Part shown: piece by piece, positions 37,763 to 53,039 of the stretch | Numbering within the stretch: position 1 is the stretch's first letter | Layout of the letters: the number at the start of each line of letters is the position of its first letter | Source of the DNA: Oculina patagonica | Taxonomy: Eukaryota | NCBI RefSeq assembly: GCF_052425735.1 | Contig: NC_135764.1 | Span: 12,400,001 to 12,464,000, forward strand | Length of the DNA stretch: 64,000 nt | Direction: 5' to 3' | Notes under the pieces: generated by a model | Database searches by the model: none | Seen by the model: the letters and a program-made list of their open reading frames with translations, nothing else | Told to the model about the DNA's origin: nothing | Made by a program: the position numbers and the translations under genes

Positions 37763-40700
37763 CTTGACTGCAGTTATACCCAAAGTACTCATCATTGCAG
37801 AAGCAAGACTGGTTTTCGTAAGTCATCAAGTCATAGTTACAGGTACCATGACCACTGCACAGCATCTCGGGTAAGCAAATACTACAATCCAGTGGTTGTC
37901 TTGTCCAGCCCTGATCACAGAAACAGCTCCCATTGAAGTCGCAGCGCCCGTGCCCTGAGCAGCGAACGTCTGGTCTGCACACCGAACAGTTCTGTCCGCT
38001 GTAGTAGCTGAGACAATCGCACGTGCCATTTCGCAAGCACTGACCATGCCCAGAACAGAACGTGGTCGGGTCACATCTGGAACATCTCCCATAGGGCTCG
38101 AACCACTGACGTTTCCATCCTTTGTAGCAGGAACACGTGTAACTCCCTTGGTTGTCAATGCAGTATGAATTCTCAACACAAGTGTGCAAACCAACGGAAC
38201 ACTCGTCAATGTTAGTGCAGTTTTGTCCATCGCCAGTCCAGCCTGGGTTACACTTGCATTTATAAAAACCAAGAGTGTTGTAGCAAGTGGCGTGTTCCCC
38301 GCACGGAATAGAGTCAACTCTACATTCGTCTATGTCTGAGCATTGAAACCCGTTTCCAGAGTAGCCCGTTATGCAGCTACAGTTATATCCACCAATGTAA
38401 TTATGACAAGACGCTCTTGGATGGCACTGATTGAGATCACTGCTCGAACACTCATCTAAATCTTCGCATAACAGAGTTCTGTTTCGGTGATATCCGTCCA
38501 AACAGGCACAGACAAAACCTCCTACAGTGTTTACACAGAAAGAGTTATGGGTGCAGTTTGCAGTTTTTAAAGAGCACTCATCGACATCGGAGCAGTTTTG
38601 TATGCCATTTCCAGTAAATCCTGATTTGCATTCACAATTGAAGGATCCCACTGTGTTATAACAAGTAGCATTGAGATGGCAAGTGTTATTTGCAAGGCAT
38701 TCATCTGTATCGTGGCAATCCCATTCTCCGTCGTTACGTTCATATCCCTGTAGACATACGCACTCGTACGACCCTGCTGTGTTCTTGCAGGTTGTTCTGT
38801 TTGTACAGTTATGGACATACTTGCTTTGATTACTGACACTAGTTTTCAAGCTTATGTTCACTGCAAGATACCAAGGAATGGAGATGACAGTTGTGACGTT
38901 CTTTCCGGTTTGAACAACGTCTACAATAGCTTGAATACAATCTACTTGCTCATTGTTAGCTTCCTCGCAGGCACAAACCAAAGTAGTGTTGTCAACATTA
39001 CTTCCATTGTTTGAAACGTTACGATAAACACATGTTTCTACATTGGAACAGACACCTGGTTTACATTCTTCCAGTCTACCTTCAACCGTCTGTTTGATAG
39101 TCCCTTCACATTCGTCAATTTCGAAACAAGCATCCGCGCTCTGAAGGAACCCTGATCGGCACTTGCACTCGAATCCTCCAATGAGATTGACACAGTCAGC
39201 ATTAGTATCACAAGAACCATACATCTGTGGACTGATGCACTCATTAATGTCCATGCAAGCCGTGCCGTTTCTATCTTCAGTGTACCCCTCTGGGCACACA
39301 CAGTAATGCTCCATCCCAACCGCAATACAAGTCATGTTTTCATTGCACGTGTCGTTACCGGATTGACAAGGGTTCACAGCGTCACACGATGAGTTGTCAA
39401 CAGCATCACATTTGCATTCATAACCGCCAACCAAATTTTGACATACTGGGGCTGATAGTGGACAGTTGAACATGCCCCACTTGCATTCATCTATATCCTC
39501 ACACTTTCGTCCAGCGTTAGAGAAGCTTCCGATACAAGCGCAAAGACTTCGTGCAGTTACATTTGCATTTGCTTTACTTGCATTGTTCGTGTCATTACTA
39601 CACTGATACTCCGCGCAAACTCTACCTTTGTCTTCAAATCCTTGCAAACATTCGCAAGTAAAGCTCCCGTTGGTATTCGAACAGGTCGCGAAAGTATCAC
39701 AGTCGTCCAAGCCAAGGTTGCATTCGTCGAAGTCTTGGCATTCGTCGTTTTCCTGGCCGCTCAATGTCCAGCCTTCTTTACAGACACATGAATAGTTCCC
39801 AGGAACATTTCTACATATCTGGTTTGCACCGCAAACAGTACCATTAGCACACTCGTCTACATCAGTGCAATAAAACCCATCACCTTGCCATCCCTGTGTA
39901 CAAGTACATTCGAAACCACCAATACTGTTGCTGCAAATCGCATTAGCTTCGCCTTTGTAGGTAGAACAGTTGTGTATCTCTTCTGTGCATTCATCCACAT
40001 CAATACACAATAAGCTGGTGTTTGAGGGAATTTTTTCCACGATTTCTGGAATTGAAGCATTTTCTATTTCTCGCCATCCTTGCTTGCAAACGCAGGTGTA
40101 ATTCCCTTCAGTGTTTAAACAGTCTTCGTTTTCATAGCAAGAATGCGTATTTAGCTCGCATTCATTGACATCTGTACAGTTGTAACCATTTCCGGACCAC
40201 CCGCTCTTGCACACGCATTGATATCCTCCTGGTAGATCGATACATTTTGAATTGACACTGCAGTTATGGCTTCCTTCTTTGCATTCATCTACATTCTCAC
40301 AGAAAATACCATTTCCTGCCCAGCCTGGGTTGCAGTAGCATTCAAATGTTCCGTTGGACTCAATACATCTTGCATGTATTGAACAAATATCGCTCCCATT
40401 GAAACAGTTTCCTCTTTTTACACAAGAGAACCCATCTCCATAAAACCCGCTTTTACACTGACACTGCACAAACGGCAATGACTTGTTTTGGACGATGCAG
40501 AAGGCATTTTCATCACAAATGTTTAAGTGTGACTCCGACTCACAACCTCCACAGTCTAAGCCATCAAAATCACAACGCTTTGTGTCACATGCTTGGTCGC
40601 AGGTTCCGTCATTAACAGATGTTACGGAGCAATCCGCCGAACATATGCAATCACCCCCATCAAAGCCACAAATTCTGTTGTTACATTCAATGTCACACTG

Positions 40701-43700
40701 CCCGTTACCGATAGAACTTTTTGGACAGGTCTTCGAGGAACACAAACAGTCCATGCCATCGTAATCGCAAGATTCCACAAAGCACTCGACATTGCATATT
40801 CCATCTCCTAACGTGGCATTCCTGCAATCCGGAGCACACTGACAATCACTGCCGTCAAATGAACATTCCTCTACGTCACATTGCGATTGACAGGTGCCAT
40901 CGGCAACCATACCCAGACGACACCCTGGACTACACTCTTTAACAACTGGTTTAGGGCAGTCACCGTTATCGAAGTCACAGGCCTGTACATTGCAGGCAGA
41001 ATCGCAAACACCATCACCTCGAAAACTTGGAAGGCAACCTTCAAAGCACAGCTCTGTTGTTAAAGCAGAAGGCTTACAATCTCCGCCATCGAAGTTACAA
41101 GCAGACACGTTACACGATATTTCACAAAACCCGTTAGCAATCATTGGAGGAGAACACGCCTTTGGACAGTTCTCTCCTGTTACTTTTTGGGCACAGTCTC
41201 CATAGTCATACAAGCAGTCGGCAACGTTACACTCTTCATCACACATGCCGTTACCTTGAAGATGTTTACTGCAAGTGCAATTTGAAACTAACGCACAGTC
41301 TCCTTTGTCCAGACCGCATAATACCGTATTGCACTGGTGATCACAAAAACCATCTGCCAACATTTTTGGACGGCATCCAGGACTGCATTCTTCCTCAACG
41401 CAATCACCACCATCAAACTTGCAAACGGTGTTGTTACACATCTGATCACACGACCCGTCTCCAAGCCACGAATTTGGACAAATGCAAACATTCTGGCAGT
41501 CTCCTTTGTCGCTTAAGCACTTAGGTATGTTGCAATCTGGATCGCAAACACCATCACCAATCCAACTTTCCGGACATAACGGAGTGCATAGCTTCACCAT
41601 TGAACAGTCATCTCCATCCCAACCAAGGTCACAAACGCAAACGCCTTCGATGCAAGTACCATGACTAGAACATCGGTTTGGACAGGTGTTGATTTGACAT
41701 TTTTTACCCGTATAGGCCAGATCACATTTGCAGCTTCCGTTAGCGAAGCACACTCCGTGTCCAGAACAGGAGGTTAAGGAATCACATCCAGGTGCTGTCT
41801 GCAGTGTCGGGTCATAGCGACTAAGCCTGCTAAAATCCATGCTTTCACGTGGTATTTGAAGATGAAAATATGGAACTTCGGATACACTCACATTTTCAAC
41901 GAGTTCAAACTCCAATAATCGGGCTTCCGTTAATATTTCAAGGCCAAGTCGAAAGTTGCTGTCGTTTTGCAGTGAAGCAGTATTAATTTCAGCGATATCA
42001 TAGTCCGTACCACCTCTTCCGAACGGAGATACGTTATATACTTCAAGCTCAATTAGTTTTTGTGCTGTTAGATAGGTCATCTTTTCGATTGACGTGTTCT
42101 GAGCTGTTAGAAAACCAACATATTTAACAATTCGGCGCCTGTACTCTCTGTAAACTAGTGTGGAATGAAGATCAGATGAGTTGACTATTTCCAGCACAAC
42201 CAGTTTGGCAAGAGAATACACGCTGAGTGATCCACGCGAGATTACGATGTACTTCTCCCCAGTTATCTTCTGTAAGTGGAATAAGACATTAAGAGAACTA
42301 ACCGAATAAATGTCATGAATACTTTCCGGCTCTAATACGAACGCGGATTGGTTAGAATAGTATGATTTGCATTCTCCATTGTCGTAGTGACATGCTTCTG
42401 TATTACAGGCTTGATCACACATGTCATTGTTGAAATGTACTATTTGCGAACAGCCAGGGCTACATGGAATCAGGTACCACAAGGGATCTTTGTAAACCCC
42501 GTCTTGTGCAACACTTACACTCACAAAATTCGGCAGTATGGGCTTTTCATTTGCCAAAGCTGTTCCGATACTCTGCCCACTCTGAACACTGGTAATGTTG
42601 TGAGGTGTAAAATGAGACACAGTTACAATAAAACCCACCCACTTGCTTTTAGGCCAACCAGTGATCTCGATACTGTCACCCTTTATTTTGACGTTTCCAG
42701 GAATCGGAGAATTGATAACTTGCAATTCATTAACAATCAGATCAAGCCAGTGCGTCAATCTAAAACAGCCCTCTAGCAATGCTCCAGTGCATGGTTCCTT
42801 GATGTTCCAGTTACATCTACCCGATTCAAGACACCTTTCTCTGCTCCCGGTGCCTTTACACGAAGACAACCCAGTGTTTTCAGATGTTATGGATCGAAAA
42901 AGACCACAGAAGCCATCTATTCCAGCCCTGTTTTGTGAAATGCGTAGGATTCTAGGGAACAGTCCATGAAATTTTGCATTTGTGGGACTAACGCACTTTG
43001 GATAATTTGGTGGTTTTGGAATGGTTAAAGGTGTATTGAAGGCTACCTGTAAAGTTCCGATATGTGCAATGTTTGTCAGTCGAATTTCTGCTTCTGTGAC
43101 TTGTAACCATTCCGATAAGGTGCGAAGACTATCATTTTGTTTAGTCACGTAAACGCAGCCCCTTTGTGAACAATCTTTCCCATAAAAGCCTGGAAGACAA
43201 AAACATTGACCAGTTTTGCAAATTCCTTTACCACTACATAGGCGACCTTTGTTCACTGGACATGCCTTTGCACAAGTTTCATGGAACCACTTCGCTGGAC
43301 TGCATAGAGCTGGTGAGCTTGGTCCTAAGGGTGTACCTTCAGTGCATATGGGGCTTTCTTCATAAAACTGGGAACCACACCAACCACAATTTGAGTTGGA
43401 AACACACTGAGAGCATTTCTGATTCAGGTGACACGTTTTCGGGCATGGCGTTCTGTAGAAAACCTCGTCTTGCGCACAGACAGCACCCGTGGTGTTTGAA
43501 AGACATTTCTGAGAGCCTTCGCACCAAAGGCAGCTTCCTGTGGTTCCACCGAAAAGACAAGATTGACAAGACGTGTGGATGTTGCAAACGCTTTCCTTAA
43601 ATGTTTTGTTCTGATACCTCGTTATATTGAGCTCCGACCACAAAACCTTCGTGAAATAGGGTAGACAAAAATCTTTTACTGGGGAAACGAAGCCTTCTAA

Positions 43701-46700
43701 GTTGGATGTCAAGTTTAATAAGGTGGTAATGGTAATCCTTGGGTGCCAGTTTCCATAGCTGATCAGCGGCTTGGAAAGATTGTAGAATGCCGAGTATCTG
43801 CTTTTCCAGCTGTATTGAATCGGATTTAGCTCTGGCGGGCAATAATAATCATGTATAATGTTTGAAAGCTTCTCATTTTCAGAAGAGTTAGTAATCAGCA
43901 CTCCAAGCATGTACCCATCGACAGCACTGTTAATGGTTGACGTTGGAAGCCTCTCTTTACAAAAGGTGGTTGCTTCCTTTGATGTATTCCAATTGCTGAT
44001 AAAGTCATCTGTGCTGAGAAGGACAGCCGTAATCCAGGTGAAAGTTTGCACTGGCTTTTGGATGTGAGGGTTAAATGTGAAGCTTTCATTTCCAACACTT
44101 CGCCCTAAACTCTCCATTTCCGACGAAAGTACTCCTGCCAAAATAAAATCAATTTCGATGTGGGATTCAGCGAAGCTGTAATGCCCTTTAAGCTTTGTTA
44201 ACATTCTGTCGTCTGTGTTGAGTTCTTGTGATACAGAGTAGGGCACAGGATAAAACAACGATAAATACTTCCAAATCTTGTTAAGGTGTAACTTTCTGTT
44301 ACCAGCCTCTGCTGACTGCGAGAGAGACCACGCCAGCGATGCAATTTGAGTTAACGATTTTTCCGGAAAAATCCTCTCTATCGCCCAGATGTCGCAGTAC
44401 AGGTGATCACATGGGGTACTTGAAATGTTGACAACAAATGATTTACTGCTGCTACTGACAAGGTTGCTTGCTGTTACATTCACCACGAACTGACCAGATC
44501 GTGGGAAGTAATGCGATACTGTTTCAGTGACATTGTGAAGCGATGTATTGTCACCAAAGTCAACAGTGAAGGAAACATTTGTCCCAATGGCTGATGTTCG
44601 TAGGATTACAGCACGGCAAGCTCTTTGATCTCCACTGACATTCAGCCTGATATTTGAGACCGGCACTTGAACGATCACTACTTCAGTAGCTGTGCTATTT
44701 CTGACGTTATTCTTAGCGTCTATATCCACGACGTACACACCAGGCGAGGTAAAATTAAGTGACGTGAAACCATATTGACTAAAAGCTCCTAAAAAGCTAT
44801 ACTTGTACTGAACGTTTGTCCCTGAGAGCGCAAACGAAGAGAATGAAACCTCTTCTCCAACTGCTTTTGGGCTGTCGGATATTATTGCCAAACCTTTAAT
44901 GGGTTTTTCGCAGAAAAGACCATCGCCAATCCACCAACGTCTGCACACACATGTAAACGATTGGCCATCAGGTCCATAGCGAAGGCAAGTAGCATTGGGA
45001 TGGCAGTTGTGTTCACCAGTTGCACACTTCCCCTTTTTAATAATTTCGTCAAGGGCAGCTACCTTATCTGCTCTGTCTTTAAGAGCCTTTTCGAGGTTGG
45101 CAGAAGCACGTAGCGCTTCTTGTCGTGCTGCATCCCGCGCGTTTCTCTTCAACTGTTCTTCTTCTTTTGCCCTTCCGAGTTCCCTCTCTTTTGTCCTAAC
45201 ACGAGTTCGCTGGTCGCTAAGATTTCTCTGAAGCTTCATTTTGTCCCTTTCCTTTCGTCTTTTTTCGTCAGTGAGAGCATCCCTGCGGTAGATTGATCGT
45301 TTGCCAAACCATCCACTAACGGTTTTTATAACCTTTCCTGCGAGGTTTCGGAGGCCTCGGGCTATCTCAGATGCTATTTTGTGGGCAATGTTAGCAATTC
45401 TGTTTACCACGTCTCTAAGTGTCCTCGAAACGTTTTTAAAAATTCTCTTCGTTTCTTTCAAGACACTGTCGAGGCGTATGACTTTTGCCACAGCTCCTAT
45501 CCAAGCTTTTCCCGTTTCAGCAGCCTTCCTGCCTGCTTGCTCTGCTGCCTTTGATGCTTGTTCAACGGTTTTCTGTGCTGCTTCTACAGCCTTCTTAGCC
45601 GCCTCTCGTGCCGCTCTCGCTGCCTCAGCCGCAGCTTTAGCAGCACGTTCTGCGGCATTAGCTAAAGCTTTCTCTGCATCGATAAGGTTATTGAGGATTT
45701 TTCCAATATCTTTAACAAGATTTGCGCCAAGTTTGAATCCCTTTTTTAGCAGGTTTTTTATCAGTTCTCCGGCATTACCGGCGAAATTTAAAAGTCCATC
45801 TGCAAGTGCACGCAAAAGCTGAGCAGGAGTCTTAAGGAAAAGCTCTTTAATTAAGGCAGGCGCTTCTTTCTTGACGAGGCTAACAACAAGTGCTGGAATT
45901 CTGTCAGGCCTAGCATCTTTCGTGTTGAATGTTAACAGTGGAAGCTTTATGTTAACTCCCATAAAAGAAAATGAAACTTTCAATGAACTTCTTCCCGGAA
46001 ATGAAATCTTTAAGTCGCAGTTAAAGCCGGTGCTCAAAACAATTCTTCCAACGTCTTGACCGAAAACACTTATTTTGCCAATGTCAATTCGCAGGTGAAT
46101 GTCAATGCTCACCTGTGCTCGAACGTTAAAGGATATGCCACGTCTAATAAGTTCAATGCTTATTTGTGAACCCATAAACAGAGATGTAGCCTGTATAACT
46201 GATCTGGATGGAGAGTCCTTGATGTAGAGTCGGGAATCGAGCAGTCGCACACCTAAAAGACGCAGATCTACTTTTGCATCTAAAACGAACACAAGGCCCG
46301 GACCATAAGCAGCTTTAACCAATCCACCGAACTCAACGACATCTTGAAAATTGAATTTCAACTGTCCAACAACGGTTATTGTGTCTTTGGTTACACGTAC
46401 CTCGCCACTTATAAGGGGCACATTACCAAGTTTGACTTGGCCTTTTGCAGAGATTGTCAGAAGATTTGACGAATCTTCCAACTTGATATTTGCTTTGGCA
46501 TTAAAACTTATTTCCACCAGGTTTGTTATACCAGCGTCCAGTCGTAAGGACAGACCAGCATTACCGAAATTCTTCACTCGAACTGCGACATCTGTAGAAA
46601 GAAGGAGTAAATTCGAGGAGGCTATCAGTAAAGCATCATCTCCAGTTTCCTTTACGGGATATGGCCAGATTTCTTTGTTCTGCTTTAACTCGTTCGGTGT

Positions 46701-49700
46701 AGACGCTGCAAATTTTAGCAAAGGCCATCTGAAAGGACCAATGTTAAAAGCAATGTCCAAAACACGGTACTTGAGAGGAACGATTTGCAACAGCCACTTT
46801 GGTTCAAACGTTTTCATAAAATTCATCCAGCCAACAAGGAACCTTTTACCGTCTATTGGAGGGACGTCCAATTTAAGTCTCCTACCGCCAGTATACTTAG
46901 GTAACTGAAGCATGGTCATGTCATTTTTGTGAGACAGTTTCAAAACGAGTAACGTACTGTTAGCAGCTTTTAAGTCTTCCAGGGATAGCAGGTAGTTTCT
47001 TTCTGTATAATACCTCAAAAGGCCAACGAGAAGGGAGGCAATTGTGCTAAAATCTTTGAATTCAGGTCTTCGATGATATATTGTCGCCTGGGCCTTAACA
47101 TCAATAAGTGTCGCATATTTTATGGAAAAGGGAGCAGCAAATATCGGAATTGGCCAGTAACCCACGATTATGAAGAAACAGTCTTTGCAGACTATGTGTG
47201 TTTGCATTTCCTCCGCGTTTATAAGTAAAGGGTTTGTCTTTGGAAGACGTGACAAGAGTATAACGAACTTCAGATCCCATAGGTATACTTCAGCGTCAAT
47301 GTCTACAAAGGGTACCCCAAATGCTGACCCGATTGTGAATCGCCGTAACGAAATGGCTAACAAATCTCCTGTGGGTGAAACTGGTATGGCGACGTCCACT
47401 GACTCATCATTTTGAACTTGGAGACTGAACGTTAATGGGCCGTTCTCAGCGACTGAAAAGGCTACGGTTATTTCTTTCGGGAATTCTGGGCTCTTGAATC
47501 GTTCCATACCACTTGGTAGGTTGTCAATGTTACACCCAATCCTATTTAAGGCACCGATGATATCGGGAGGAGGCCAAATGGGAATGTTCTGTTTCAGTAG
47601 ATTGGAAACAAAAGGGATATTTTTGAAAAACTGTCGCATGATTGGCAGCGTCAGTGGAATGCACAATTTGTCTAATCCCTGAACATCAATGATAGCTGAA
47701 AAGCCGTCTTTTGTGTAAGCAAGCGAAGGGAGACTAAGTCTCACGTAAGAATCCTTCTGACAGAGCCAAGTAAAATCGCAAACGTACTCTTCTTCTACTT
47801 TGTTGCAGGGTATCAGCTCGTCCAGAATTGGTATAGTCTTGAGCTTGATTGCTAATCCTGTCTTCTCTGTTATAGAGATATCCATCTGTAGAGTGTCCTT
47901 GAAGACTTTGAATGGCAGCAGCTTATTAAGCGTATCGAATCCCGAAACGTCAAGGGATATCTCAAGTTCAGGCTCCTGTGGTGTGCTAAATACGATTTTG
48001 GGATCATAAAACTTTATTGTTAAATGGCAATCTAGTCCAGCGAGTTTGAGGTCAACATCAGCGTCAAGGAGTTTTTCCTTTAATGTAACAATAGCCAAAC
48101 GTGGTCTTACAGTTATCAATCCTTGAAGATCACTGAAGTGCTGTTCCAGCGGGATGCCCGTGAAGGATGCCTTGATGCCAGCTGTGAGCTCCCAGTCCTT
48201 GTTTTGCTTAAAACCGAGTTCCAAGTATTGAACACTAAGACTCGCTTTGAAAACGTTTGACGGGTCAGCCATGGGTAGCGGGAAACTAAAACCAACGTCG
48301 AAATCTTGAAGATCACATCGGATATTTGCACTGAGAACATTAAATCGAGGTTTGCTAAACGTAATGTTTAGGCTATTTAGAGTCACCTTTTTGAAGTTCA
48401 AGAATTCGTCTGGGACACTTTTTAGCAATTGTTCTCCACCAATCAGGCTTGCCAAGTCATACATACTCAACGGCTGGTGTCCGAGGTTCGTTATTTCTAA
48501 ACGTACAAAGTCCTTGAAAACGGACAGAACTGTTGGAACCACGGCTTTGAAAAGCTGTATCTCGACATAAATCGTAGGTGTGACAATTTGTTTGGCAGCA
48601 TGAAAGGGATTTGTAGCGAAGAGGCTGACGCGGATATGTCGAATAGTTATTCCCAAGGGAAGCCAGACGTCGGTAAGATTTGCTTCAAACTCGCACGTTA
48701 TGTTGAATATGTGAAATTGAGGGTTGGGAATGAACGAGGCTGTAAACTTCTTCAGCATGAATTTTTCGGCTTTTGAAAAAATCTTATCTGGAAAAAGCGA
48801 CTTTAGATCAAAACCACCACCAGTCAATCCAACGATGTTTGCTGCTGAGAGTTGATTTTCTTGATGTGAAAGAATGTGAAGTTTCCACGCCTGAGACGGG
48901 AATTGTGGCATTGTAAGGATACCGCGGGCCTGGATGATATTATCTCCTTTTCCAACCGTGATAAGGCATGTCAGTGTTCCAGCTACATTGACTTGGACGG
49001 CTGTCTTAACGCTAAGGTCAGCAGTTATGTTCTCTATCTTCAGCCAATTATCGACAAGAATTACTTGGTTTGGAAGAGAAAACTTCAAAGCAAAGCCTTG
49101 TACCTGCAGCTTTATCAAAGGAGGTTGTAATTCTAAGTTTAAGAACTTCAGTGAGATCTTTAACAAACGAAACGCTGGTGGAAAAAGGTCCGGTAAATCG
49201 AACCCACCAATCAGTAACTGGCCTAACTCTGGCAATGTTAGGTCTGGAAAACTTTGGAATCCAATCTTCATTTCAATTAAGTGTGGTAGAGGTGGTGGAA
49301 AGGGTATTCGGAAAGAAACTGGTAGGGCCTTTAGGACGAATGTACCGGATAGAGCTGCGTGAAAGCTGTCTCGGACGTTGAGATCCAGTGTAATGTTCTG
49401 AAATGTTAGTGGAAAGCCTTTCAGATTCCAGCGCTTTAGCGCAGTTGCTGTTAAATCTAATGAAATCATACGTGCCGAACGAGGCTCGAAATGTGCTTCA
49501 AGTGGCCATACTCGTACGTTTCCAATGAAGTCCGAAATTGGTGTTAGCATGCCAGATGGTATTAATTTCCCAACCATCGGAAGTACAGCGATTTTGGAAA
49601 GATTAAAAGTGACTGCACTCTTCAGTTTTAAAATAATCACAGACCGGGGGGAATCGGGTATGTTGCATTCCAGTGGAAGCACAAGGCGTTGCTCGTTATC

Positions 49701-52475
49701 CGACAGTTCAAGATTGCCAGTTATGACAAGGTTGTAAGAGGGTATATCGTTGAGATCTTTAACGCGCAGGTTCATGGTAGGTGCTATAAGAGAACAGCAG
49801 GACTTGAAAAAAGACCAAGCGTTTGATATCTGTAGTTCAAGGGAAAACGAATGCAACGATTCTAAATTTTTCGAGAGCTCTACTTCCGCCAACTTTACTA
49901 AAGACGCACCAATAGCATTCATGTCAAGAAGACTGGCGTCTGGCACACTCTTCAATTGTGGGACCATCTTTTGCAAAGCATCCTTCACCAGGCGTTCCAG
50001 GTCAAAGGCATTCATGGGCTTTACAAGACGCAAGAGGTGACCAGCAGATGAGTTTGTTAATTCGAGTTCCAAGTTTGTAGTTCCTAATAAAAGAAATCCC
50101 CTTAAGCTAAACAACTGAGGTGTCATAACGGCTGTGACATTCGAAATTTCAAGAGCTCCAATTCCACCAAGGTCCCACGATGTGCTGCATACAGCGATAA
50201 ACTCAGTGATTTCGAATGCTGTCAACCTTTCATCAAAAGTTATCTGTAGCTTTTGAAGAATTAACTCTGGAAGATATGACCCAAGCATCGTTGGAAATTT
50301 GCTTCTCGTCAGAATGCCAATAAGTTGCTTGAATAAAACACGAGGAGTGTCATGTTCAGGGAGGCTAATGGTAAGATTTCGTTGTTTTGATAAAGGAACA
50401 ACCATCTCAAAAGGTATGTGTACACTGCCCTCTACCAAAACGATCATTCCTCTGATCAACATGTCGAAGGACCCTTGAACGTTGACCTCGATCAAAAACG
50501 ACACATTTTCAACGCCGAAAAAGTCATCAAGAAGTTCCCATGAATACTTTGGGAGGGCACCCATAAATGTTACCTTTTCAAGTAAAAGATCACTTGACAA
50601 ATGGAACAAAGTTTTTTCAAGGGTAAAACCAGGTACGATTGCGAGTTTGGTTCTCCGCAGACCAGTTAAAGTTTCGTGAAGTGTTTCGCTAGCACTCCCA
50701 AAGAATGTACGATAAACGACCCTGATAAACGGCAGAACACCAAACATTTCCATTCGTCTCGAAAGCTCTATGACGTGGCCTCCGCTAGATGGTGGCCATT
50801 CAATTTCACAAGGTAAGCTGAAATTTCCAAGCATTATTTCACCGGTAACTCGGGTGCGATTGAATGTGTAAATCACTGTCATATTTCCAAGATAAAAGAA
50901 CGGAAAGTTCCATTTTGTTCTTGACGGTATTTCAACCCGAAAGGCTGTTAATAGGAAAGAACCAGTTAAACTCGAAGGAAACTGGATCTTCAACTTTTTA
51001 ACCAGGAAGTCTGTTAGTAGAGTCTTCAGAAAGGATGGGAAAACATTACTTAGTCCTCCCAGTTTTAAAATGCTGTTCAAATCAGCCTGTATCGTCTTTC
51101 CAGCTTGAAGCGATAAGGATAAGGCTTCGACTTTTGTTGGAATTTCGATCACAAAAGGAAATTCGAGGAATATTGGATTCCCGATCACAACTGTTCCAAA
51201 AACCTCTGCTTTGATTTCTGCGAGACGAGATCCTGGGAGAACAGCTACTTTGAAGCCTAACGTCGAATTCAACAATTTTGTCGGAATTGATGCTCCGTCG
51301 AGAACGTTCCATTCTGTCGGAATTCCAATCAAGATGACCATACTGGCTAGACTTAACTTTGGTCTCAAGCTGTAGCTAATTTTGAACAGGTAAAGCCGAA
51401 ATTCAAATGATGATAGATTCAATCGCATAAAGGCTGTGTCTGGTCGACGCTCTTTTCTTTCTTCAACACATGATAGAAGACTGTCGATAGAAATTGATGT
51501 ATTTCCGTTCTTAGCGTCTTTCATGGCATCTAAGCTCAGGAACCGTTTGGTGTTTTTCAGCATAGTAACCGATAGCTGTTGTCCACAGATGTCGATGGTG
51601 GCTTCGAATGTGTTACGAGGTTCCGTCAGTTCTAATGTGGCATTTCTTATAGTCACTTTGCCTAGAACTAAAAATGGTTTTGTCGAAATAGTCGTGACAT
51701 TGACTATTGAGATATTGGAAAGCCCAGGTGCCACGCGTAGGAAAAACTGCGGTACTTTGATGTTTTGTGAGAAGTTACCGATTGCTTCTAAAGTATTTCT
51801 ATCCATGTGTGAAGAAAACAACGGTACCAGCGAGCTGAAGGTGACAATGGCATTCTTGTCAGCACCGCTTATTTCCAAAACATCGTCTGGGCTTTCGGGA
51901 AAGTCGATTTCAATGGGCAGTCCTGGAATGCTCAAATTGGAGGCAACTTGATTAATCGCCGCGATAAAACCTTTGGCTTTCACTTTAAATGTGTAAGGAA
52001 GAAAACCTAGTTGAACAATCAGTTTAGGCTCAACGACTTTGAACTGAAATTTGTTCAAGGCATCCCATCCAGGGATACTGAACATCATATCAATCGATGA
52101 TAGGTTTCCATCATCAAAAGACAGTGTGAAAACATCAATGGCGAAACCAAAGTTTCCAACCCCAACCAATTGAAAAGAGGGCAATGAACCATTGACGCCT
52201 ACCTGTTTGGTGAATCTGTCAGCAAAGTCATATATATCAGGGACTGGGAAGTTCTGGTTGCTTGGTAACTGTATGCTTCCACTTTTGTTCAAAGGCCATG
52301 GAAACTGCACAGAGATGTTTAGGCTTCCAATTTTGACGTCAGCATGGTGTAGCCCGGAGCTTTCGTTCCAAATGTTGACAAGCTCGATGTTTGCTTTAAG
52401 CAAGACTTGCTCGACTTCCAGCAGAGAGGAAAACTGCCTTTCACCAGTGGAATAACAGCTAATAACGCACCATAG
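37763..52475 (-). CDS. Giant multidomain secreted protein, 14,713-nt exon (beta-repeat region, coiled coil, EGF, PKD, PGLYRP2-N-like, PSI, LysM, M23-like, LNR x11, Ca-EGF array)
   Basis: Uninterrupted ~4,900-codon frame. Acceptor tttacag ends at 52476 and is followed by LWCVISCYS, a plausible end of a signal peptide; donor G|gttag at 37762. Domains were recognised from Cys spacing and motifs. The ATG exon was not found. Confidence 0.92.
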
Positions 52476-53039
52476 CTGTAAATTTGAAACCAATATTCTA
52501 TTAGTCTATCGAGTAGGCTTAATCATATTCGAATAAACAATCATTTAAGAAAAACCACTTCTAATTATAATTTAAAATGTGTTGTGTACAGTTAACAGTG
52601 TGATCTCTGCGATGCAGAGTATGTCGTCTATACTAGCTAGCATTTACGCCAACGTATTGATGAAAACAGGTATTTAATAATTGGGAAACACGGCAATAAT
52701 AATAAGCATGTCAAAGTACTTTGTGACAACTCCGCAGCAGTAACCTAATTAATACCATCGGCGACCTTCCCAGTACCTTTTCCGTTCTCAAGAAATGGGA
52801 CGGATAACTGGACTACTTTATTCCTGAAATGCTATTCATTAGAAAAAAGAGGCCAACCCTCAACACGCAATCGGATTCCATCCTCACGCGAAACTATTTG
52901 TTTAGCCAAATGTAAATTCTTTATCATCTCACACCTTTCACCGCATATATCAGACTGTTCGATTATATCTTTCTATTTTGTAACTTGTCATGGCGACATC
53001 CAAACGTTGCGCAGAACTCTTATCGCTAATTTTTATTCT

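Follow-up and report, generated by a model that had tools for sequence, protein, structure and literature searches.

A Met-TelC-type Lipocone domain, a LysM domain and a degenerate LytM barrel clustered in a giant secreted protein of the stony coral Oculina patagonica

Introduction

The minus strand of a 64,000-nucleotide stretch of the Oculina patagonica genome (assembly GCF_052425735.1, contig NC_135764.1, positions 12,400,001 to 12,464,000; hereafter the window, in whose numbering coordinates are given unless a contig is named) carries a very long open reading frame (ORF). A first-pass annotation of this stretch placed in it three modules associated with peptidoglycan: a region recalling the non-catalytic N-terminal part of vertebrate PGLYRP2 (module (a)), a LysM pattern (module (b)) and an M23/LECT2-like domain (module (c)). 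Are these modules real, to which families do they belong, and would a protein that combines them cut bacterial wall material, bind it, or serve the coral in some other way?

The question bears on a recently described protein superfamily. The Lipocone superfamily was defined by Burroughs et al. (eLife 2025; PMC12419801), who assigned the N-terminal region of PGLYRP2 to a mostly inactive ‘Met-TelC’ family that arose from TelC toxins, bacterial proteins that cleave lipid II. Met-TelC was proposed to act as a PAMP (pathogen-associated molecular pattern) receptor for polyisoprenoid-pyrophosphate-linked wall intermediates, and the architectures described for it pair it with vWA, Ig and transmembrane segments (cnidarians and arthropods) or, among chordates, with an amidase (PMC12419801). 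A feature unique to the TelC families is an aspartate six residues past the canonical acid of helix H4, paired with a conserved arginine of the C-terminal helix (PMC12419801).

Results

Three modules within one constrained reading frame

The annotated region (42470–44410) corresponds to residues 2694–3341 of a single uninterrupted frame in the ORF list, which runs stop-free for 4911 codons (37758–52493, minus strand; residue i starts at window position 52493 − 3(i − 1)). The peptides quoted in the annotation are all present there, on the minus strand and in one frame. The clustering of three modules within ~650 residues is real, each module having its own structural match; a check for the absence of significant matches in at least two of the three modules instead gave specific matches for 3/3. 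The modules, together with the linker between the second and the third, are as follows.

43614–44411, minus strand: module (a), Met-TelC-type Lipocone domain, residues 2695–2960 (AlphaFold2 (AF2), Foldseek, VIA-align, HMMER, hhalign and column counts)
43011–43160, minus strand: module (b), LysM domain, residues 3112–3161 (PDB profile search, AF2, VIA-align and hhalign)
42768–43010, minus strand: Cys-rich linker, residues 3162–3242 (predicted local distance difference test score (pLDDT) <50 at model residues 63–103; invariant Cys columns)
42459–42767, minus strand: module (c), core of a degenerate M23/LytM β-barrel, residues 3243–3345 (Foldseek, VIA-align, hhalign and column counts)

Homologous sequences comprise at least 25 proteins with 36–88% identity over the whole 661-residue query stretch, and those that are named all come from stony corals, i.e. 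O. patagonica LOC144660575 and a Stylophora pistillata protein named ‘fibrillin-1-like’ by NCBI. A paralogue lies on the same contig at 28454106–28454900 (contig coordinates; locus L004), 16 Mb away; it is 61% identical over residues 2195–3468, and its stop-free frame of 4982 residues has the identical order of PKD, Met-TelC, PSI, EGF, LysM and LytM domains. Compared with its closest relative (88% identical, synonymous divergence (dS) 0.20), the exon has a ratio of nonsynonymous to synonymous divergence (dN/dS) of 0.21. The long stop-free ORF, the 25 homologues, the paralogue with its own copy of the cassette and the dN/dS of 0.21 together indicate that the gene is real and constrained. The quoted patterns are beyond chance, as is evident from the end-to-end conservation of a 671-residue stretch, the overall purifying selection and the separate structural match for each module.

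The Met-TelC domain evolves ~2-fold faster than the rest (dN/dS 0.41 versus 0.21, from one pair only). For the LysM codons (43011–43160) dN is 0.074 and dS 0.028 relative to the closest relative, a ratio of 2.6; positive selection on the LysM domain was considered and set aside, as with 50 codons and about one synonymous change this ratio is not significant alone.

Module (a) resembles the N-terminal region of PGLYRP2

Module (a) had been placed at 43845–44160; its location was right and its extent too narrow, the real span being 43614–44411. The peptides IDFILAGV (residues 2781–2788, 44130–44153), TSTINSAVDGYMLG (residues 2851–2864, 43902–43943) and KLSNIIHDYYCP (residues 2875–2886, 43836–43871) correspond to helices H2 and H4 and to the C-terminal extension of the domain, respectively. 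The AF2 model, made from an alignment of 26 sequences, is helical with one β-hairpin and has a predicted template modelling (TM) score (pTM) of 0.73.

Comparison of this model with the Swiss-Prot AlphaFold models using Foldseek placed mouse, pig and human PGLYRP2, in this order, in the first three ranks (probabilities 0.99, 0.99 and 0.82), with TM scores by query of 0.44–0.47; the Swiss-Prot matches below them had probabilities of ≤0.10 and TM scores of ≤0.20. The matched part of PGLYRP2 comprises its N-terminal, non-amidase residues ~31–398. Among AlphaFold fold clusters, 26 matches had a probability of at least 0.82, after which values fell to ≤0.15; six of the 26 were PGLYRP2 or N-acetylmuramoyl-L-alanine-amidase clusters, and others were bacterial proteins matched through a C-terminal domain and bearing the names lysozyme, LysM-domain protein or peptidase M14. 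When the model was compared exhaustively with 48,161 solved chains using VIA-align, the sole match with Z ≥5 was the Streptococcus intermedius toxin TelC (5ukh; Z 6.3 over 190 residues), the next reaching Z 3.9. TelC surfaced in this exhaustive comparison only: Foldseek against the PDB gave no match at E ≤0.001 and did not list TelC. Pfam has no family for module (a), and a feature-based search of the ESM Atlas returned no usable match.

Residue conservation supports the same assignment. Asp2859 and Arg2899 are invariant in 26/26 sequences and, as judged from the alignment, constitute the TelC-specific Asp/Arg signature; their counterparts in the TelC-like protein family described below are Asp194 and Arg231, likewise invariant. 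The H4 motif N-[GS]-A-x-D-G-x-x-L-G is shared between the coral sequences (INSA(V/I)DGY(M/I)LG) and vertebrate PGLYRP2 (FLNGALDG(A/V)(L/I)LG), and the latter form occurs in the Met-TelC set of PMC12419801. The annotated likeness to the PGLYRP2 N-terminal region is thus borne out by both the Foldseek ranking and the shared motif. The annotation had also described PGLYRP2 as a peptidoglycan amidase; here the likeness holds, but the relevant part of that protein is its N-terminal Met-TelC Lipocone domain and not the amidase (PMC12419801). The coral motifs FILAG and FTWIT are absent from the Met-TelC sequence file of PMC12419801.

Both catalytic positions are altered. The position of the H2 catalytic histidine is occupied by Phe2783 (Phe in 23, Ala in two and Ile in one of the 26 sequences), which hhalign places opposite the invariant His of the GHVLTG motif of TelC-like proteins, and the position of the canonical H4 acid (2853) is Thr, Ile, Arg, Ala or Ser, with an acid in 0/26 sequences, Thr2853 lying opposite the invariant Glu of the TelC-like family. 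An active TelC enzyme was rejected as an identity for module (a), the H2 His and the H4 acid being missing in 26/26. The lost active site rules out an active TelC and not membership of Met-TelC, because most Met-TelC members are inactive. From its sequence, module (a) is predicted to be a catalytically dead TelC-type Lipocone domain, like most of that family, and we have little doubt that it is a Met-TelC Lipocone domain of the same family as the PGLYRP2 N-terminal region, descended from TelC-type toxins.

TelC-like relatives of module (a)

Searching 1.84 billion representative sequences with the module (a) profile (HMMER) yielded a single non-coral match, a protein of 307 residues (P0031; E 9e-4). 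Its own relatives are mostly bacterial, one of them coming from a Competibacteraceae metagenome-assembled genome; three carry an N-terminal LysM domain, two an SH3_3 domain and one a PAAR-like DUF4280 domain. The family has invariant His, Asp, Gln and Glu residues within the motifs GHVLTG, DNLY..SGDLGQ and AE..GD.DG, and motifs of this family (GHVLTG, DIDGF and the DNLYA type) occur in the Prok-TelC and Met-TelC sequence files of PMC12419801. Set against this family in hhalign, the coral alignment gave a local match (probability 96%, E 3e-9) spanning H4 and the C-terminal extension and, in greedy mode, a match across 240 columns, i.e. the whole domain (E 8e-10). Neither P0031 nor its family gave a TelC match against PDB sequences.

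As an observation in its own right, P0031 and P0040–P0060 (alignment A5) belong to one TelC-like Lipocone family, whose active site is predicted to be intact. Its animal members are LOC128241910 of the bivalve Mya arenaria and three proteins whose contigs measure 90 kb to 2.1 Mb; these members could be active TelC-type enzymes of metazoans.

Module (b) is a single LysM domain

The LysM pattern noted at 43020–43155 coincides with a domain at 43011–43160 that is bracketed by invariant cysteines. In a PDB profile search with 25 coral sequences the top three matches were all LysM proteins (Ecp6, E 0.016; a LysM receptor kinase, E 0.045; LytN, E 0.32), and hhalign against three bacterial LysM domains gave E 2.6e-4. 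The AF2 model has the βααβ topology of LysM (strands at model residues 9–12 and 51–54, helices at 19–26 and 30–36; pLDDT 73–83) and superimposes closely on LysM structures in VIA-align (4uz2, Z 8.0, root-mean-square deviation (rmsd) 1.1 Å over 48 residues; and >15 LysM entries besides, among them 4xcm, Z 7.5, and 5k2l, Z 7.1). The LysM consensus is kept at Y-x-x-x-x-N-D-T/S-L, at the invariant Asn and at T-I-P. We assign module (b) to LysM with high confidence.

Module (c) is an M23/LytM barrel that has lost its zinc ligands

The annotated M23/LECT2-like domain (~42470–42760) has an M23 fold, with a core at 42459–42767. By structure the domain starts further upstream, near residue 3195 (42911), and as a whole spans residues ~3195–3345, including a Cys-rich insert of ~80 residues: the C-terminal part of the linker, from FCGLF at residue 3195, supplies the first strands and the insert, and the VIA alignments of the M23-like domain begin at model residues 90–98. 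Foldseek against the PDB gave 53 matches at E ≤0.001, of which all 50 listed were M23/LytM domains, the best being the LytM domain of EnvC (E 8e-6). VIA-align returned Z scores of 11.0–9.0 for 20 M23 entries (EnvC, Z 10.4; DipM, Z 10.2), and the coral profile aligned with 13 bacterial and archaeal M23 domains over 90–105 columns (hhalign, E 4.5e-5). Among PDB sequences, the profile of this part found nothing beyond a chance ribosomal match. We are confident in assigning module (c) to the M23/LytM barrels.

Human LECT2 is among the structural matches (5b0h; Z 9.5, rmsd 2.3 Å, 88 residues, 20% identity). A specific LECT2 relationship was nevertheless discarded, since this score is no higher than those of many bacterial M23 domains and the zinc histidines are absent from the coral domain; the M23 fold proposed in the annotation stands, and the LECT2 kinship does not.

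The metal-binding positions account for the term degenerate. At the HxxxD motif, the histidine position is Thr3247 (Thr in 23 and Ser in two of 25 sequences) and the aspartate position is Asp3251 (Asp 21, Glu 3, Gln 1). At the HxH motif, the first position is Phe3323 (Phe, Val, Tyr, Ile or Ser) and the second, 3325, is Ser, Arg, Thr or Lys, with His in 0/25 at either. Because both zinc-binding histidines have been lost, module (c) is a degenerate LytM domain and not a canonical M23 peptidase. An active M23 peptidase was accordingly rejected (zinc histidines replaced in 25/25 sequences), and the cutting of cross-bridges that the annotation associated with M23 enzymes does not carry over to this domain.

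Layout of the gene and protein

The cassette is embedded in a mosaic protein, on which Pfam recognizes only EGF-type, LNR (PF00066, 11 stretches) and PKD domains across the whole ORF. The remaining features of the gene are listed below.

37761–52475, minus strand: giant single exon of the secreted mosaic protein, ~14.7 kb and 4,900+ codons (ORF list, tblastn, and Pfam EGF_CA, LNR, PKD and EGF)
44412–44906, minus strand: PKD domains, residues ~2530–2694, directly N-terminal of the cassette (Pfam PF00801, E 2.4e-12)
43170–43598, minus strand: two PSI-like Cys-rich repeats and one EGF domain, residues 2966–3108, between the Lipocone and LysM domains (Pfam EGF_2 and EGF_Teneurin, E ~1e-6)
42369–42464, minus strand: first LNR (Notch/Lin-12) repeat, residues 3344–3375, abutting the M23-like domain (Pfam PF00066; motif position)
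37083–37496 and 36093–36704, minus strand: downstream EGF-CA exons (tblastn of the homologue P0005)

From the N terminus, the 5′ signal exon is followed by ~2,200 Cys-poor residues and a coiled coil; after these come EGF, PKD and Met-TelC domains, the PSI-like repeats with EGF, LysM, the degenerate LytM/M23 domain, and LNR and Ca-EGF arrays. The PSI assignment of the Cys-rich repeats is not significant (Pfam E 9.4). Positions 45280–45700 and 45900–52475 are blank in Pfam, apart from weak ApoLp-III or Senescence-type helical matches in homologues.

At the 5′ end, a splice acceptor (tttcaaatttacag) lies immediately upstream of 52475, and the tblastn alignment of a 5366-residue O. patagonica homologue (P0005) begins at this position with its own residue 12. 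A short 5′ exon carrying the signal-peptide start must therefore lie upstream; no exon encoding the initiator Met and the ~11 opening residues of the signal peptide was found there. The apparent TTG start of the ORF (52476–52493) is intron sequence.

Between the first LNR and the next EGF block, residues 3376–3560 (41814–42368) form a conserved stretch of ~185 residues without a Pfam family. The succession of an LNR repeat and this unassigned, α/β-looking region is loosely reminiscent of the Notch negative regulatory region.

PGRP, M23 and LysM domains elsewhere in the genome

No Amidase_2 domain, the domain of peptidoglycan recognition proteins (PGRPs), was found in the ORF (Pfam) or in a six-frame search of the 529-Mb genome, in agreement with the absence of PGRPs reported for the anthozoan Nematostella (PMC7308585).

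The sole canonical Peptidase_M23 match in the genome lies elsewhere (C671:87112–87444, locus L002; E 1.5e-10) and has the HxxxD, the middle His and H-L-D intact. It sits in a Gly/Ala-rich open frame of 1759 residues that resembles a phage tail tape-measure or bacterial protein, and may reflect a scaffold from a contaminant or a symbiont, or else a transfer. The genome yielded a single other canonical LysM (C9:30854454–30854567, locus L018).

Discussion

A predicted binder of bacterial envelope material

Three domains whose relatives act on lipid II, wall glycan and wall peptides lie within 650 residues of one secreted protein. In the enzyme-derived Lipocone and LytM domains the catalytic residues are lost in every family member, and the arrangement is kept in two paralogous lineages. 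Because of this loss, seen in the alignments, neither domain can work like its enzymatic ancestors. Taking domain identities and function as one statement, we lean towards the view that the cassette is a non-enzymatic, multivalent binder of bacterial envelope or N-acetylglucosamine (GlcNAc) glycans, held in a secreted EGF/LNR scaffold. It would then bind rather than cut bacterial envelope material, the Lipocone pocket binding polyprenyl-pyrophosphate-linked precursors such as lipid II, the LysM domain GlcNAc-containing glycan strands, and the groove of the dead LytM domain peptide stems or cross-bridges. The EGF/LNR scaffold would present the cassette in mucus or extracellular matrix, where it could capture, agglutinate or position bacteria in a lineage without PGRP amidases.

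Several lines of evidence support a bacterial target. Among the TelC-like relatives in bacteria, LysM, SH3_3 and PAAR-like DUF4280 domains occur as fusion partners, as in wall-directed effectors; in vertebrates the partner of the Lipocone domain is a peptidoglycan amidase; a dead LytM domain placed after a LysM is the NlpD/DipM arrangement; the genome shows no Amidase_2 domain; and the Lipocone domain has the raised dN/dS given above for one pair. Recognition of bacterial wall or chitin, which the annotation had suggested from co-occurrence, is plausible on sequence grounds and is strengthened by the domain identities.

A number of observations pull the other way. The HMMER profile of module (a) had no match among PDB sequences and, among the 1.84 billion representatives, recovered coral proteins and one TelC-like protein only, with no PGLYRP2; a word-indexed search with the alignment of PKD and module (a) (E ≤10) likewise returned PKD proteins only and no PGLYRP2. 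Confidence in the AF2 models is middling, with a mean pLDDT of 66–67. Module (b) did not reach the Pfam gathering score for LysM (PF01476), LysM3_NFP being matched only at E 0.2, and Pfam PF01551 touched one of the 25 members of module (c) at E 0.033, below its gathering score. The Pfam searches with LysM and Peptidase_M23 suggested in the annotation thus gave no significance, and support came from family profiles and predicted structures. His3294, at the middle catalytic position of module (c), is kept in 24/25 sequences. Contigs from four public runs span the stretch colinearly without joints, and none of these runs is on record as RNA. Finally, LysM domains also bind chitin, and LECT2 is a vertebrate M23 fold that acts as a protein ligand, which leaves room for roles in matrix or signalling.

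More specific and rival functions

A more specific form of the envelope-binding proposal is that the giant protein and its paralogue are peptidoglycan/lipid II sensors of PGRP-less stony corals, whose modules read the lipid anchor, the GlcNAc-N-acetylmuramic acid (MurNAc) glycan and the stem peptide or cross-bridge separately. The Met-TelC pocket would read the undecaprenyl-pyrophosphate anchor, and growing bacteria would be captured with high avidity and without destruction on a mucus or matrix scaffold. On this view the LysM-LytM pair, and perhaps the Lipocone domain, could have been acquired from bacteria, in which fusions of TelC-like domains with LysM already exist. We put this forward tentatively and with considerable doubt.

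The scaffold itself invites a different explanation, in which the cassette would attach to chitin-like GlcNAc polymers of the coral itself or to matrix proteins and take part in assembling organic matrix, extracellular or skeletal; that its domains are bacterial in ancestry would then have no bearing on what they do today. Extracellular-matrix-type modules (Ca-EGF, LNR and PKD) dominate the protein, the Stylophora homologue bears its fibrillin-like NCBI name, LysM domains bind chitin oligomers besides peptidoglycan (the PDB matches include Ecp6, CEBiP and the LysM of a Volvox chitinase), and no catalytic activity against bacteria is predicted. However, all three modules are of wall- or lipid II-directed ancestry and two have no known chitin-binding role; the Stylophora protein (XP_022795137) was not found in the literature searched, including skeletal proteomes, whose supplements were only partly covered; and the faster evolution of the Met-TelC domain (0.41 versus 0.21) suits recognition of non-self better than a structural role. 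A role in matrix or biomineralisation seems unlikely.

Re-use of the dead domains as a signalling ligand or protein-protein adaptor for host receptors, in the manner of Wnt and LECT2 and with the LysM domain as a spacer, is harder still to sustain and appears improbable. Inactive Lipocones (Wnt) and the M23-fold LECT2 (5b0h, Z 9.5) do act as protein ligands (PMC12419801), and the LNR with the unassigned ~190-residue region after the cassette loosely recalls regulated Notch-type modules. Against this, LECT2 scores no better than bacterial M23 domains, no Wnt-specific features were seen (Wnt8A reaches only Z 3.2), and three wall-related modules would have come together by coincidence.

An active antibacterial effector that hydrolyses lipid II or cross-bridges through a reconfigured active site, as might be argued from the retention of His3294 (M23 catalytic position) and Asp3251 (HxxxD) and from the mention of a ‘reconfigured active site’ in Met-TelC, of which most and not all members are inactive (PMC12419801), is highly improbable, given that both M23 zinc-binding histidines (3247 and 3325) are replaced in 25/25 sequences, that the first His of HxH is replaced as well, and that 0/26 sequences have the H2 His or the H4 acid of the Lipocone domain.

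Comparison with known systems

The closest counterpart of the proposed envelope binder is PGLYRP2. The coral module (a) and PGLYRP2/Met-TelC have in common the fold, the TelC-specific Asp and Arg, the H4 motif, the catalytic loss, secretion and an adjoining peptidoglycan-directed module. They differ in their partners, which in the coral are LysM and a dead LytM domain within an EGF/LNR/PKD protein of ~5,000 residues and in PGLYRP2 an Amidase_2 domain, such that only the N-terminal domain of PGLYRP2 is shared with the coral protein. TelC (5ukh) is the only solved structure matched at Z ≥5, and some of its bacterial relatives carry LysM. In contrast to the coral domain, the TelC-like bacterial proteins keep the His, Asp, Gln and Glu of the active site and have toxin-like fusions, and their LysM is N-terminal of the Lipocone domain, whereas in the coral it is C-terminal.

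A LysM domain followed in the same chain by a degenerate LytM domain is the arrangement of NlpD and DipM. The coral LysM (residues 3112–3161) likewise precedes the degenerate LytM (residues ~3195–3345), and with NlpD, DipM and EnvC the coral protein shares an M23 barrel without zinc ligands. In contrast, its host is a eukaryote, and it has the Cys-rich insert of ~80 residues with invariant, disulfide-type cysteines. In bacteria these proteins activate Amidase_3 cell-division amidases, a role for which no target is obvious in a coral, and likeness to M23 in sequence is seen at the profile level only (E 4.5e-5). LECT2 resembles module (c) in being an animal, secreted, disulfide-rich and non-proteolytic M23 fold. 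It keeps the zinc-binding His/Asp/His triad, whereas the coral domain has lost both zinc histidines. CEBiP, LYK/NFP and Ecp6 share with module (b) a βααβ LysM flanked by cysteines in an extracellular protein; they differ in having three packed LysM domains where the coral has one, and the coral protein lacks a kinase or glycosylphosphatidylinositol (GPI) context.

The domain families are known, Met-TelC including its cnidarian members since 2025, and the architecture seems new, Figure 5-source data 2 of PMC12419801 aside. The network files of that study link LysM to Min-Wnt and not to Met-TelC, and contain no M23 or PKD node. Among the literature searched, Met-TelC is mentioned in no other paper, and searches on coral LysM and M23 returned nothing relevant.

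Implications

The role of the large N-terminal region of PGLYRP2 was long unknown, and the 2025 proposal that it senses lipid-linked wall precursors rested on context alone. That Met-TelC stands beside LysM and a dead LytM domain in a remote lineage of animals associates it independently with peptidoglycan-directed modules and so supports this envelope-sensing proposal, and the ~650-residue cassette provides a compact, expressible object with which to test it. In corals, where bacteria of mucus and tissue matter for reef health, the protein is a concrete candidate for recognition of the bacterial wall in animals that lack PGRPs.

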